A DNA stretch of 64,000 nt from Octopus bimaculoides (lineage: Eukaryota): contig NC_068981.1 of the NCBI RefSeq assembly GCF_001194135.2, forward strand, positions 52,953,901 to 53,017,900, in the 5' to 3' direction. Under the pieces are notes generated by a model. The model did no database searches and was not told the DNA's origin. It saw only the letters and a list, made by a program, of their open reading frames with translations. The translations under genes were made by a program, and so were the position numbers. This document shows, piece after piece, positions 9,941 to 62,087 of this stretch (position 1 is the first letter of the stretch; each line of letters opens with the position of its first letter).

Positions 9941-10884
9941 TTGTCATCAAAGTGTATATATATATATATAAAGAGAGAGAGAGAGATTATTTATTATATA
10001 ATATGTAAATCTGTATATATATTTATATGATATATATTATATTGTGTGCATATATACATATATATATATATATANNNNNNNNNNNNNNNNNNNNNNNNNN
10101 NNNNNNNNNNNNNNNNNNNNNNNNNNNNNNNNNNNNNNNNNNNNNNNNNNNNNNNNNNNNNNNNNNNNNNNNNNNNNNNNNNNNNNNNNNNNNNNNNNNN
10201 NNNNNNNNNNNNNNNNNNNNNNNNNNNNNNNNNNNNNNNNNNNNNNNNNNNNNNNNNNNNNNNNNNNNNNNTATATGTATGTATATCAATGAATATAAAT
10301 GTATATATAGAGGGATTCTTTCTTATATAGTTTTAGCAATGATGTCATGCTGTGTTGGAAAGTAATACCTTGAGAACATTTTAATATTATGATGATATTT
10401 AGGCAGCGTACTGGGAAAATCATTAGCATACTGGGCAGAGTTTTTTTCTGCAGTCTTCCACTTTATGTATTAGTAATAATAATAACTATAGTAAAAAGTA
10501 AGAAAATAAAGAACATCAGTAGAAGGATGAGTGCAAAAAGATTTCAAACTAGGTTTTAAAGTTAATAGTTGGAGACAGAGAGCAGATAGTAACTGAAACA
10601 GATTATTTTCAGCAGAATCAATCAATTAAAATAGAAAATAGGTACAATAGAAGTTTGAAAAATATTTTTTCCTAATACCTCAGTGATATCAGTAAACGTC
10701 AGCCTTCCATTGGCATTTGTATCTTCTGCTTATAATTTTCCATCCTTTTGCATGTAAATCCTGTTTAATAGTTGAATAGTGATGCACCATGTTAATTGCA
10801 ATACTTATTCCCAAAAGTTAAATACTTCTGATAAAGAGAAATTTTGTTGGACATCTAGTGTCTATATGTGTGCGTGTGTTATAT

Positions 10885-12076: not shown

Positions 12077-13653
12077 ATGTGTGTGTGTGTGTGTGTGTGT
12101 GTGNNNNNNNNNNNNNNNNNNNNNNNNNNNNNNNNNNNNNNNNNNNNNNNNNNNNNNNNNNNNNNNNNNNNNNNNNNNNNNNNNNNNNNNNNNNNNNNNN
12201 NNNNNNNNNNNNNNNNNNNNNNNNNNNNNNNNNNNNNNNNNNNNNNNNNNNNNNNNNNNNNNNNNNNNATGTGGTATATATATTTAATATATATATATAG
12301 AGAGAGAGAAAGAGAGAGATTTATGTATTAATGTGCGTGTATGTGTGTCTGTTATCATTATCATCATCATTTTCATTTTACATCTACTTTTAGGACTGGT
12401 ATGGTCTGGATGGGTCATTACATTTTGATTTGGTTCTTATTTAGAGATGCTAACACCCTTGGTGTGATTGTTGATCTTGCCTCACATGTCAGTTTTCATT
12501 TTGGCATAATTTTTATAACTGCATGTTCTTCCTAATATTTTACTGAATATACAAGGTCTAATTTATCAGTGCACCAGCATTAGAGAGGCTGTCATGTACA
12601 TGAAAAGATTCAAGAGTCTTCTTGACCCTATGATGTCTCTTGTCATTTTACAACCACTTTGTAGCGTGTGCTGATGGATATTTTATTGCAGAATCAGGTC
12701 TAGAGAGGTGTCACATTCTCAGCCACACAAGGCTAAGGTTTTCTCAGCCCTGTGATATCTCTACTCATTCATTACGACTATAAATAGTGTGTTGCATGCA
12801 TTTTATCATAGCATCCATACTTGTGAGCTTGTTTTGCATTGGAATCTTAGTTAAGCTTTGTTGTCACTGTTCAAGACATTGTGACTAGTATAGTGGGTTG
12901 AAGAAAAGGTTGTTGTGAAAGATGAATTTGGATAAGAGAGAGAAGGAAGAGAGTATAATAGGTGAAGCAATGTTGGTACAGAGGTAGGTGGGAGATGGGA
13001 GAGAGAGAGAGTGCTAGAGAATTAATGAGAAGGAAAAAGCCAAGTTGTGATGAGAGAGAAAATTATGACACAGGGTAAATAGTCAACATATGTTTGAAGG
13101 TAAAAAAGAGAGTGATTGATGATTAGTTGTAGAAATGGCCAATGGTAAGAGAATGTGATGGATATTAGTAATGAGTGTTATGCGGGAGAAAGTAGTGGCT
13201 AGTTGCATAGAAGTGAGTGGTAATGTTAGTTGGTAAGAGAGAAAAGGAGTGATGGAAAAGGTCAGATAAATGTCAATAGAAGAGTGACTTGAGAAAAAGC
13301 GAGTCATGATAGGTAGCATAGGAAGTTAAACGGAGAGTGTATTGGATACCAGTAAATTCAATACAATTCCTTCTTATTCATATAGAGATATGCATACATT
13401 CATATATAATAATAATATAGTAGGATCAATCAATCAATCATGGTAAAAACATTTGGTTAGTATCTAGCAAAAAAGTGGCTTGCATAGAAAACAAATAAAT
13501 CAATAATTGATCCATAAAGTTTATTAATCAGTTCATCAAATGCACTTTGTCCCATATTGAGATTAGATAGAAAATTCCAATAAGATGAGAGATGCTATAC
13601 AAATCCAGTTTGAAAGCATCAAATACTGCTTGTTATACAATAATCAAATCTAT

Positions 13654-56155: not shown

Positions 56156-57776
56156 GTATGTTGTTGTTATTAGTCTCTTTCTATCACTTAAATACAGCAC
56201 AAAACTTTCCTTTGCCTTCACTCACAACTTAACTAGAAAATTTATATTCCAACTGCTTTAGTTCATATAGTTTCCTGATCTAGGAATCACTTTGAATAAA
56301 TGGGTGTAAATAAATTAGACGTGATCATACACGCACATACATACACACATGCAGTAGCTCTAATTTTCAATAAGTTTGAGTGTGGTTGTATCTGTTATAT
56401 ATATAAAGTCTGTGTCTGCTAAAGTGAAATATAAAAGATATTTTCTTTAAAATAGTATAGGACTTACAAATCGTAAGATATATTTTAGTATTAAAATTTG
56501 TATAAAAAATTCTGAAAATGTAGCAAAGAAAAAAAAGCTTTAAACTTAGATGTATTTGCTGAATATGTACATCTCAATTTGTAAATTAAGATAGACAACA
56601 GAAGAAAATTTATATTAAATTTCCACTTAATCAAATTCTAATGAAATCTATCATTTTCTTTAACCATATAAATTAAAATTTAGAAACATATATACTTTTT
56701 ATTCTTCAAGTTATATTTATCAATATAGTAGATTTAATATTAAATATAATAGATTTTTTTTTAAATGATATATTTGACATTTCTTATACATGATTTTTAT
56801 TAAATCCATCTTTCATCAGTATTACTTTCTAGAAGACATTGACCAGCAATTGAGGGACATTATTTTCCAATTTTATGAAGCTTATTCAGTGTAAAGGAAA
56901 TCAAATAAACTGTCAGCATATAGCTTTTTCATATATTTTTTTAATTTTTAGAAAAGAGGGTCAATGATTTGAAACACAAAATATCTGTCCTATAATTTAG
57001 TTATCAATTATAAGAGAATTTTTATGTATACTTGGATACACATCTCTTAGCCCCTGCAATACTTACTATACCCAAAAAACACTTTTCATGATTATTCTTG
57101 CAGGTAGATACACATCTTGCACAGTGCACTTTGAATTAAACTAACATCTTATTGCATGATATACTTAACAATGACTGTTAAACTTTACAATTTTTTCCTA
57201 TACTTCTTCCTTTGAAAACAATTAATTTTTCACCAATTTCATTTTTTCAAATTTAAAACATTTAAATGTGATGATCTATATATAAATTTCATATTTTTTT
57301 AAGCATTTATATATCTTAGGAACCTTTCATTAGAAGTGGAGATAATCTGCTATTTGTTTCTTCAATACCTAGTCAAAATTAATATCATAGTAACTGCAGC
57401 AAATTTATTATTCATTCTAAAGTTACTATATATTATTCTTAAAATTAAATCTCATGTTTCATCAAATTCAATTTAAGACATTTCATTATGATTTCAGAAC
57501 ATTTTGATTCTATCTGTAGTTCATTGACTTAGTGTACTTAAGAAATATTTGTGCTTGACATGTGGCCAAGTTGTATCATCATCACTTAATGTCCACTTTC
57601 TCATGCTTGCATGGGTCAGACAGAGTTTATTGTGGCAGATTTTTTACGGCAAGATCCCATTCCTGTTGCCAACCCATAACTATTTCCAAGCAAGATAATA
57701 TTCTCCAGGGTCATGCGACACACACACATTCACATATATATTTTAATGCATATAGGTAGGTATATAAATGTATGTA

Positions 57777-60194: not shown

Positions 60195-60506
60195 GTGTAC
60201 ATTTAATACACATTAGAGTTGAATTGTTTGGCTAAACCTTTCGAAGTAGGCTTCAGCTAGGCTACAGTCCAATGACCCAAAAAAGTAAAAGATAAAAGAT
60301 ATATGTATATATATTTGTATCTCCTTGTCTTGGCATCTGCCGTAATTGGAAATGGATGTAACTGTCTCACAGTTTTCTGTGAAAACATGTTTCACTATGG
60401 GGGAAATATTACCTTGCTTGGAAACAAGAATGACATCTGGCTGTAGAAAATCTACCTCAATGAGTCCTAGTTAACCCATGCAGGTGTAGTAAAGTGGCAT
60501 TGAAAT

Positions 60507-61967
60507 TGTGGTGTTATGAGCCAGGCTGTGTTGTAGGGAAGGATTGGAAGTGAAGGAGTAGGCATGTCCTGTCGGAAGTGGTACTTATGGATCTCATCTC
60601 AGGGCCAGGTTCAGCCCTTTCATCACGGTATCCAGCCCCACCACATTGATGTGGTTGCAGTTGTCCTTCTTCCTAAGCCAGGCCGCATCCTCCACCTCGA
60701 CACCTCCAATTTCCAGGAAAACTCCCGTCGCCATGCTGCTGGCATCACACCACATGACCCCCTTCTTCAATTTGGGCACATACCAGTTCCCTCTTACTGG
60801 GTCCTCTTCAGTCACCCTCTCCAAGACTTCTTGTATCATGGCAGTTGTCTTCTCGCCCATGTTATCACTCCACCTCACTCCTTCAGCTTGCCTCTTTATG
60901 AAGCTGCATTCTGTCTGGAGCCATCCCCATCACAACATTAATCCCGTCTACTACACAATCAATTACAATAGCCCGCAACCTCAATCTTGTTCCTCGTACC
61001 ACTCTCTCTACATCACTACTTCCACTGCATTCAACTTCCAAACCGTCAACAGCCCTTACACTACTCACTCCACTCCATTCTTCTACCACTTCTGGAGTCA
61101 TTAGGGTTGTTGAGCAGCCTGTGTCTATGAGGGATCATGACACCTTTCCGTTCACCACGACTTCTCCTTCTGGCAATGACACCTCTATTCCTTCGATGGG
61201 ACAACTACTGGCGCAGTAGTCTCCTTTGGACTGTTTCCCTGCATGCATTCACTAGCAATGTGGCCTATCTGTCTGCATCGATAGCGAATCACTCCAGGCC
61301 TGGGTTCCTGCCTGCTCATCTTTGAGCCCAATTCTGGGATCTCATTCCCTCTCCGAAACACCAACATGCCAGCCTTGTCTCTCCTTAGCTTGAGTCCCAG
61401 GGCAGCTCCTCCCTCCATTGCCTCCGGTGGTTTGGCAGTTAGCCCAAAACTCCTCAGGTGGCTTATGACCTCCTTTGCCGACGCTATTCTCTCATCCACC
61501 AAGATGTCATAGATATAGGAATTGGTGGCTCTTTTCACTTTGTCGGCCTTTCCCAGGATGGTCTTGAGAATTGTCGCCATAATCTTCGGTGCTGAATTCA
61601 GTCTGAATCCCAACCTGGTCAGGCAGTACGTCTGTCCTTTATACCTTACCAGCTGATATTTCCACAGTCTCTCTTGAACTCGCTTCTGGCATCCCCTTTT
61701 CAGAGTATGCTGATAGCAGCCTACTGCGTTCTTCAATGTCGGAGGATCTCCCTTCCAGTGCCATTCCACTGTCCATTGCCGGCCATCGAACATAGTTCAA
61801 AAATCATTGTCTGTGATGGTGTGTGCAGCATATTTTTCTTCACAGCTCTCACCACTCTCCTGTCACAAACTCACAGCGCATCACGCCCCCCCTCCCAACA
61901 CCGAACACTACACCAGCTTCATTGACCATAACACCTCCCAAAACACAGCCTGGCTCATAACACCACA
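60507..61967 (-). mobile_element. LTR-retrotransposon-derived (Gypsy-like pol) element with 26-bp terminal inverted repeats and scrambled internal domains
   Basis: Ends tgtggtgttatgagccaggctgtgtt / aacacagcctggctcataacaccaca; 5-bp TSD GAAAT (60502-06, 61968-72). Contains RT (YCLTRLGF.LNSAPKIM, SYIYDILV), Gag knuckle (RCRQIGHIASEC), protease (LIDTGCSTT, 61117-25) and RNase H (WCDASS, HINVVGLD). Confidence 0.88.
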
Positions 61968-62087
61968 GAAATTATGTTGATGATAATGATATATGTACAC
62001 ACACACATACACACTCACACCTCATAACACCACAGAAATTATGTTGATGATAATGATATATGTACACACACACATACACACTCACAC
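61954..62087 (+). repeat. 67-bp direct tandem duplication spanning the right end of the LTR-derived element
   Basis: 61954-62020 equals 62021-62087; includes the last 14 bp of the TIR, the TSD and host flank. Confidence 0.9.

Follow-up and report, generated by a model that had tools for sequence, protein, structure and literature searches.

A single-copy, internally scrambled LTR retrotransposon relic with two exchanged coding blocks in the genome of Octopus bimaculoides

The locus described here lies within a stretch of 64,000 nucleotides of Octopus bimaculoides DNA, hereafter referred to as the window, in which positions 60507-61967 constitute a 1461-bp insertion of LTR-retroelement origin. 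The termini of the insertion are TG...CA, and its first 26 nucleotides, TGTGGTGTTATGAGCCAGGCTGTGTT (60507-60532), are the exact reverse complement of the last 26 (61942-61967), the match being 26/26 and, when extended, 29/31. This inverted pair was detected by blastn in the 64-kb window with an E-value of 2.9e-07 and is the sole internal repeat of the element. The reference also shows an apparent 67-bp tandem duplication at 61954-62087. The coding remnants are all on the minus strand and, read in the sense direction, the element consists of a 26-bp end, block B (61941-61310), block A (61309-60921), block C (60926-60597) and an LTR end of about 75-91 bp. The features of the locus, the five internal junctions (J1 to J5) and the evidence for each are given below from left to right, with L001 denoting the closest relative, a locus of Octopus sinensis (CM016859.1).

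60502-60506, no strand: left target-site duplication, GAAAT (5 bp); the motif occurs once in paralogous host-repeat copies
60507-60532, minus strand: left 26-bp terminal inverted repeat, which is the 3' end of the 3' LTR (U5 att end, ...AACACCACA); the terminus is common to other contigs with unrelated flanks
60507-60597, minus strand: retained 3'-LTR end piece of about 75-91 bp, with 60507-60581 being family LTR and 60582-60597 probably its diverged continuation; family reads, L001 LTR match
60597/98, minus strand: J5, N-terminal part of RNase H joined to the LTR piece, about 5 nt of microhomology (CCCAC); loose end before 60598
60597-60926, minus strand: block C, DUF7047 connection domain and N-terminal part of RNase H (WCDASS, 60752-60735), cut off at the LTR piece; DUF7047 Pfam E = 3.4e-08
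60921-60926, minus strand: J4, N-terminal part of the protease joined to DUF7047, 6-nt microhomology (GGATGG in sense); contig 60867-60979, exact, at unique depth, in 4 runs
60921-61309, minus strand: block A, Gag end with a CCHC knuckle (61286-61245) and the N-terminal two thirds of the protease (61248-60922, LIDTG at 61131-61117); Pfam, homologues
61305-61310, minus strand: J3, C-terminal part of RT joined to the Gag knuckle, microhomology of 2-3 nt; in-frame fusion, contigs
61305-61673, minus strand: block B2, C-terminal part of RT, with YIYD replacing YIDD at 61517-61506; 81% to L001 RT_RH
61673, minus strand: J2, RT-internal deletion removing about 270 bp that are present in L001 (9638-9907), microhomology of 2-3 nt; alignment with homologues and L001
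61673-61941, minus strand: block B1, C-terminal part of the protease (LGGVMVNEAG, 61941-61912), linker and N-terminal part of RT (FDGRQWTVEW, 61790-61761), with several stops; homologue alignment, translation
61941/42, minus strand: J1, 26-bp end joined to mid-protease; contig 61836-61983, exact, at unique depth, also spanning the right flank junction
61942-61967, minus strand: right 26-bp terminal inverted repeat, which is the 5' end of the element (TGTGGTG...), joined straight to mid-protease at J1; exact inverted match to the left end
61968-61972, no strand: right target-site duplication, GAAAT (5 bp); the motif occurs once in paralogous host-repeat copies
28942-29125, 39499-39657, 57575-57687 and 12337-12375: host-repeat paralogues continuous over the insertion point, with (G/A)AAAT once in each

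The reconstructed empty site (60340-60506 joined to 61973-62020) aligns without a break with the four paralogous host-repeat copies in the window. An earlier reading, made from the sequence only, had described a clean insertion with perfect 26-bp inverted ends and a 5-bp GAAAT duplication, placed within an older repeat; the 26/26 match, the presence of GAAAT on both sides and the continuity of the joined flanks with the four paralogues bear out both statements. TG...CA termini, a target duplication in the range of 4-6 bp and a continuous empty site are all found at this locus, as in integrase-mediated LTR insertions, and the best explanation is that the integrase of the parent family placed the element in the tail of an older host repeat.

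Pfam analysis of the element itself recognised the CCHC knuckle, the aspartic protease and DUF7047 and found no RT domain in the RT fragment of the window, which was identified by its homologues. The C-terminal part of the RT (61688-61305) corresponds to residues 75-202 of L001 RT_RH with 81% likeness and block C to residues 218-327 of the same protein with 72% likeness. The RT and the knuckle are joined by J3 in frame within a 202-aa ORF (61793-61185), block A carries one frameshift and one stop codon, and a 1-nt insertion is present near J2, at 61697. The RT is without about 90 residues and has YIYD where L001 has YIDD; it is dead, as had been stated earlier on the YIYD motif.

Both ends of the element were analysed in relation to the LTR of the family. 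At the left, family reads depart at 60581 and go on as GGCCTGTGGATCCCACC..., where the window has the similar TACTTATGGATCTCAT, and the family LTR probably continues in diverged form to 60597, the RNase H homology starting at 60597/98. An antisense 12-mer match between this piece and the L001 LTR has a z-score of 5.3, and the extent of the piece (60507-60581/97) agrees with the LTR-like 3' end of about 80 bp that had been proposed for the element. The LTR-like sequence of about 150 bp that had been proposed for the 5' end of the minus strand has to be withdrawn, since other family copies read 60921, 14 nt and 61941 as one continuous protease; 61941-61800 is thus the C-terminal half of the protease together with the linker, and the LTR-derived part comprises 26 bp only. 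No direct repeats were found at the ends of the element, the LTRs of the relatives L001 and L002 being 272 bp long. The PPT motif of the clade (GATCTNTAGATCAGGGNGGCG) is absent from the window and coding sequence adjoins both end pieces. The element is accordingly devoid of a PBS, a PPT, R and a full LTR.

A comparison of the joined translation with a large protein collection identified 85 relatives, the best named ones belonging to Octopus sinensis and O. bimaculoides (62-79% identity) and others to crustaceans and nematodes. On P0001, one of these proteins, the protease maps to residues 3-74, the N-terminal part of the window RT to 153-183, the C-terminal part of the RT to 277-404 and DUF7047/RNase H to 422-529, and residues 184-276 have no counterpart in the window. 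Five octopus relatives were compared with the element at their genomic loci, the closest being L001 and L004 (CM016862.1) of O. sinensis and L002 and L005 of O. bimaculoides. L001 and L004, with 78-84% DNA identity to the element (the range also found for the RT and RNase H of L001 at the nucleotide level), show the parental layout base by base: knuckle and N-terminal part of the protease, 14 nt, C-terminal part of the protease with linker and N-terminal part of RT, 270 bp, C-terminal part of RT, 44 bp, and DUF7047-RNase H. The 270 bp between the two parts of the RT are absent from the window. L001 is compact, and its 272-bp LTRs (TGTGGTGTC...CACACTACA) accompany Gag, protease, RT-DUF7047-RNase H and integrase; the LTRs of L002 (TGTGGTATG...ACACCACA) are also 272 bp long, and its target duplication (ATTTC) measures 5 bp. 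Both the interior and the terminus of the element show homology to this family with its full LTR structure. Natively, the parent family runs from Gag(CCHC) through protease, RT, DUF7047 and RNase H to integrase. The architecture of RT, DUF7047, type 1 RNase H and integrase is widespread in molluscs, crustaceans and nematodes; a search of the full-text literature returned no papers naming the domain DUF7047.

The superfamily of the parent was examined with the domains of the relatives, in which Pfam detected RVT_1, DUF7047, RNase H type 1 (RVT_3/RNase_H), Integrase_H2C2 and rve, arranged as PR-RT-RH-IN, and detected neither RT_RNaseH nor Peptidase_A17. The RT-RH protein of L001 had no match in PDB by phmmer, and a PDB profile search gave weak matches only, to retroviral, foamy and caulimovirus RTs. 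The label 'Gypsy' for the parent family is not confirmed by these domain and profile comparisons.

The family is moderately abundant, with word depths of about 1800-2500 for the interior and about 11,000 for the LTR terminus, as against about 40 for unique sequence. The same left terminus occurs with unrelated flanks in 14-18 contigs per run, and the family numbers tens of copies for its interior and a few hundred for its LTR ends. Family contigs carry many other deletion joints. About 85 sites (approximately 6%) distinguish the element from the family majority; it is therefore old, with time for changes in place.

The native order of protease, RT and DUF7047/RNase H is found in at least 30 homologous proteins, and at the DNA level in L001 and L004. 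In the element, the knuckle and protease piece is placed between the C-terminal part of the RT and DUF7047, so that the parental order A-B-C has become B-A-C by a swap of two adjacent blocks. The permuted domain order, with RT ahead of knuckle and protease, had been recognised in the sequence-only reading and is upheld by these relatives, and the swap of A and B likewise sustains the earlier point that deletion alone could not have produced it. Parental positions are re-used in the process, the end of block A being 14 nt before the start of block B and the end of block B about 44 nt before the start of block C. Contigs from other copies in the same genome have 60921, 14 nt and 61941 adjacent, and also 60924/26 joined to 61309/26. 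The minus-strand translation over the former joint (...GINVVMGM-DAIVR-LGGVMVNEAGVVFGVG) is that of a continuous protease and corresponds to ...VVMGMDAITHLGGVTVNEAGVTFGF of L001, while native Gag extends past 61309 in contigs of other family copies.

Microhomology at the junctions had been suggested as a check on the origin of the permutation, and 2-6 nt of it are present at J2-J5. Together with breakpoints that match the order of minus-strand synthesis, it is consistent with template switching, without being exclusive to it, and makes a mosaic formed by several template switches, as envisaged earlier, a reasonable origin. The RT deletion at J2 may pre-date the other junctions.

The structure was examined in public runs of the same organism, four of which (X1, X3, X6 and X7, from three studies of 2015, 2022 and 2025) provided exact contigs. 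At 100% likeness, contigs of 105-148 nt cross both flank junctions as well as J1, J3, J4 and J5 in these four runs, and overlap each other across most of the element. Their depths were as follows.

X1: junction contigs 32-50; unique flank contig 37
X3: junction contigs about 42; flank bin 60340-60395, 48
X6: junction contigs 14-29; unique flank contig 16
X7: junction contigs 52-75

When the likeness was lowered to 88%, J3 was crossed by one contig per run only, and by that same exact one (depth 32, 41, 23 and 64), while the family contigs on the Gag side, whose word depths add up to about 800 in X1, part from the window sequence at 61306-09 and run on into native Gag. A blastn search found no second copy of the element within the 64-kb window, and several copies of the same structure at different sites with different target duplications were not found. 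No empty-site joint was reported in four runs (X1, X2, X5 and X6), and no intermediate, less rearranged allele was seen in six. The unique-depth contigs over J1, J3, J4, J5 and the flanks thus indicate that the permuted form is real and present as a single copy; as far as short-read contigs show, it is not the misassembly that had been considered as a possible source of the permutation. The element is a one-off, single-copy, non-functional and internally scrambled relic of an LTR retrotransposon.

How the blocks came to be exchanged is less certain, and we lean towards the view that the rearrangement preceded integration and took place during minus-strand DNA synthesis, the integrase having inserted an aberrant, template-switched cDNA. 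The plus strand of the window is the minus-strand DNA of the element, and left to right is the order of minus-strand synthesis. Synthesis would have begun in U5, with 75-91 nt copied, and an early jump into RNase H would have been followed by copying back to the start of DUF7047. A jump ahead to mid-protease and copying back to the Gag knuckle would come next, and then a return to RNA not yet copied, from the RT end to mid-protease, with one further skip in the RT, the template ending 14 nt short of the earlier landing because RNase H would already have destroyed what had been copied before. A second end recognisable by integrase would finally have been gained, either from the inverted end of the LTR itself or from the 5' end of a minus-strand DNA, and integrase, requiring just two terminal att sequences, would have inserted the dead molecule.

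Re-use of breakpoints is expected where RNase H destroys the copied RNA template. That the last stretch stops where the earlier excursion began, and that the return lands beside the point of departure, would follow from such destruction, and this argues for a role of RNase H and for timing before integration. The same timing is suggested by the two minimal ends and the target duplication, which are intact around five internal junctions. A copy without PBS, PPT, R and a full LTR would be unable to replicate again, which fits the uniqueness of the element.

Two origins of the 26-bp inverted repeat are considered, independently of how the blocks were exchanged, and the balance between them is close to even. 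The LTR of the family may natively start with at least 26 nt that are the reverse complement of its end, in which case the right end of the element would be a remnant of the 5' LTR; alternatively, the right end may have arisen anew by inverted duplication of the U5 end, the growing minus strand having taken the 5' end of a minus-strand DNA as its template, so that a U5 att sequence would stand at both ends. The LTR ends of L001 have extended inverted repeats. Their inverted similarity over about 30-45 nt (z = 5.0) speaks for the native origin, yet it is imperfect, with 82% over 28 nt; the family may have unusually long LTR terminal inverted repeats, as had been proposed. Contigs, raw DNA reads and RNA reads at the left end gave ambiguous candidates for a U3 start, departing at 60537 (AACGGTGAATCAAGG...) and at 60551. 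The read class departing at 60551 is weakly co-linear with U3 of L001 and L004 (z = 3-4), and depth about halves from 60550 to 60581, both of which favour a native repeat, but it consists, in part at least, of a U5-type variant that lacks 8 nt. Before 60507, a PPT-like prefix (..ATCTTTATCAAAGGAAC) is present in some runs and absent in others (X1, X13), a variation that counts against the native origin; the prefix was not relied on. The native origin further demands that the breakpoint fall in the first 10% of the LTR. For the copied U5 end, the match is perfect (26/26), whereas the inverted repeats of the relatives are imperfect, the repeat stops exactly at the start of the protease, and run-off on a DNA 5' end would yield an exact terminus with nothing else required; against it, such an event is rare and is without direct support here. 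With a long and perfect native inverted repeat, the sequences predicted by the two origins would be identical.

A normal full-length insertion could instead have been scrambled later, in place, by double-strand breaks with the loss of most fragments and the reinsertion of the Gag-protease fragment nearby; in a variant, replication-based template switching (FoSTeS/MMBIR) takes the place of the breaks, with separate ordinary deletions in addition. Old copies of transposable elements commonly gather internal deletions, and the many deletion joints of the family and the divergence of the element, about 6% from the family majority, are in keeping with such a history. Microhomology of 2-6 nt fits end joining or MMBIR too, a single break at mid-protease accounts for block A ending 14 nt before the start of block B, and a cluster of double-strand breaks with reinsertion of a fragment also accounts for the re-used breakpoint. 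Scrambling in place is nevertheless the less convincing course of events and is considered unlikely, as all five junctions would have to lie between two very short ends (26 and about 91 bp) that stayed intact, the target duplication remaining perfect and the flanks unaffected. The perfect 26/26 match would moreover be unexpected if the native LTR inverted repeat were as imperfect as in L001, and the runs listed above gave neither an intermediate allele nor an empty-site joint, the scrambled form itself being present as exact contigs in X1, X3, X6 and X7.

Autointegration connects the last nucleotide of the LTR with a site inside the element and gives circles; it was rejected, as here LTR nucleotide 26 joins the protease and nucleotide 1 joins host DNA. 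Because terminus and interior are homologous to an LTR element, a TIR DNA transposon, of Ginger type or other, was rejected as well.

The sequence-only reading had also entertained a mobile, non-autonomous (MITE-like) family that shares the permutation and is mobilised in trans, to which the two integrase-type ends with their target duplication and the very abundant left terminus might seem to point. It had itself noted that a single copy with junctions unique to the locus would speak against such a derivative, and four runs show contigs of single-copy depth over J1, J3, J4 and J5. A single contig per run spans J3 at 88% likeness, at the very place where the Gag-side depth of about 800-fold departs, the window contains no further copy, and reverse transcription would be impossible without PBS, PPT and R; a family of this kind is thus very improbable. 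Mis-joining of repeat contigs in a gapped draft is the least credible source of the permuted order, for although the window is a draft with 12 N-gaps, the parent family is repetitive and 9 bp after 61178 are present in run X1 and missing from the reference, the exact unique-depth contigs of 105-148 nt over the flanks, J1, J3, J4 and J5 come from runs of 2015, 2022 and 2025.

The nearest known systems are rearranged or deleted LTR retrotransposons with the order PR-RT-RH-IN, of the Ty3/gypsy, BEL/Pao or retrovirus type. The element shares with its octopus relatives the protein domains, the TGTGGT...ACCACA LTR ends, a 5-bp target duplication and an LTR piece homologous to that of L001; unlike them, it has no direct LTRs, PBS or PPT, two adjacent coding blocks are swapped, and its LTR ends are reduced to 26 bp on one side and about 91 bp on the other. 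By analogy, its several junctions with 2-6 nt of microhomology, its deletions running in the direction of minus-strand synthesis and its re-use of breakpoints would resemble template-switched retroviral and retrotransposon cDNAs (forced copy choice, non-homologous strand transfer). It differs from these in one backward jump, which yields a permutation beyond deletions alone, and in a 5' end that is not a normal LTR. We know of no genomic copy with exactly this layout.

TRIM and LARD elements retain two direct LTRs, a PBS and a PPT and form multi-copy families. The element is like them in having a non-coding or non-functional interior and an integrase supplied in trans, and unlike them in being unique and without direct LTRs, PBS and PPT. 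MITEs and Ginger-type TIR transposons likewise have terminal inverted repeats that begin with TG, as well as short target duplications; the element is set apart from them by a left terminus and an interior of LTR-retrotransposon sequence, by its single copy and by coding remnants without a transposase.

The element is a rearranged, dead copy of a common octopus-type LTR retrotransposon and not a new mobile-element family. It is of little import for genome biology, being a dead repeat copy with no sign of mobility, of function or of a new element class. Its modest value is that of a worked example, in which swapped blocks, re-used parental positions and microhomology make the breakpoint pattern unusually legible. 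A fuller reading, speculative and of rather low probability, is that the element is the fossil of a single failed reverse transcription, in which the gaps at the re-used breakpoints (14 nt and about 44 nt) would be the trace of copied template lost to RNase H, and the copying of the 5' end of a minus-strand DNA would have placed U5 att sequences at both ends. If true, it would provide evidence, from nature and in vivo, that a pair of U5 ends suffices for concerted integration. If the rearrangement indeed pre-dates integration, the element shows how badly reverse transcription can err and yet yield a substrate for integrase.

The right edge of the scrambled element (window 60507-61967, minus strand) is marked by a duplication that extends into its flank.

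Window 61954-62087: perfect 67-bp tandem duplication, with copies at 61954-62020 and 62021-62087

The duplicated unit (61954-62020) takes in the element's final 14 bp, followed by the GAAAT target duplication and 48 bp of the flank. Since it spans all three, the tandem duplication must be later than the insertion, or else an artefact of assembly. The window is a gapped draft assembly with 12 runs of N (10-830 bp each) and a base composition of about 66% A+T. On the left of the insertion, the immediately adjacent host repeat (60396-60451) reaches a summed word depth of ~57,000-66,000 versus ~40 for unique sequence; it is part of a highly abundant interspersed repeat whose copy number is well above one thousand, and its paralogues inside the window are terminated by ATGATG-type and AC-rich simple repeats.

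Within the protease stretch (61178-61235), a contig of the public sequencing run X1 covering 61096-61274 at unique depth carries nine additional bases (ACTGTAAAC) after 61178, and an exact contig across 61180-61235 was found in none of the runs examined. Because these bases restore three protease codons that are present also in the related Octopus sinensis element L001 (IEVCLQSLP vs IEARLSSLP), the reference either has 9 bp deleted here or contains an error in its consensus. Exact pieces of 60470-60700, including the unique junction region, were observed among the contigs of RNA runs at a very low depth of 2-4. They reflect read-through transcription that is weak at best, or else carried-over DNA.

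Among the related octopus elements L001 and L004 (both O. sinensis) and L002 (O. bimaculoides), a polypurine-tract region immediately 5' of the LTR is strongly conserved in all three.

L001, 11930-11955: polypurine-tract region, GTGATCTNTA(A)GATCAGGGNGGCG
L004, 9980-10002: the same region
L002, 11780-11802: the same region

The sequence following the 5' LTR in the three elements is AGCTATTTC(A/G)G and not a TGG-type tRNA primer-binding site. In L004, the LTR (10002-10060) has its own start (TGTGGTGTTGG...) repeated 42 bp inward, and the 5' LTR lacks both its U5 end and the leader.

Among the 85 homologous proteins (P0001-P0085), the order RT-DUF7047-RNase H (RVT_3/RNase_H)-Integrase_H2C2-rve is recurrent: it occurs in cephalopods, one gastropod, numerous crustaceans and the genera Trichinella/Trichuris. 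A single entry carries the label of a Pseudomonadota MAG and is probably a contaminant. No paper mentioning DUF7047 was found in a full-text literature search. At other genome loci, the first 31 nt of the terminus (60507-60537) recur in a minor class of reads and contigs, which then continue with AACGGTGAATCAAGGAAAGCATTCTGATCC, identically in several runs. This class could mark where the U3 of a subfamily begins, or could come from a different element with the same end.
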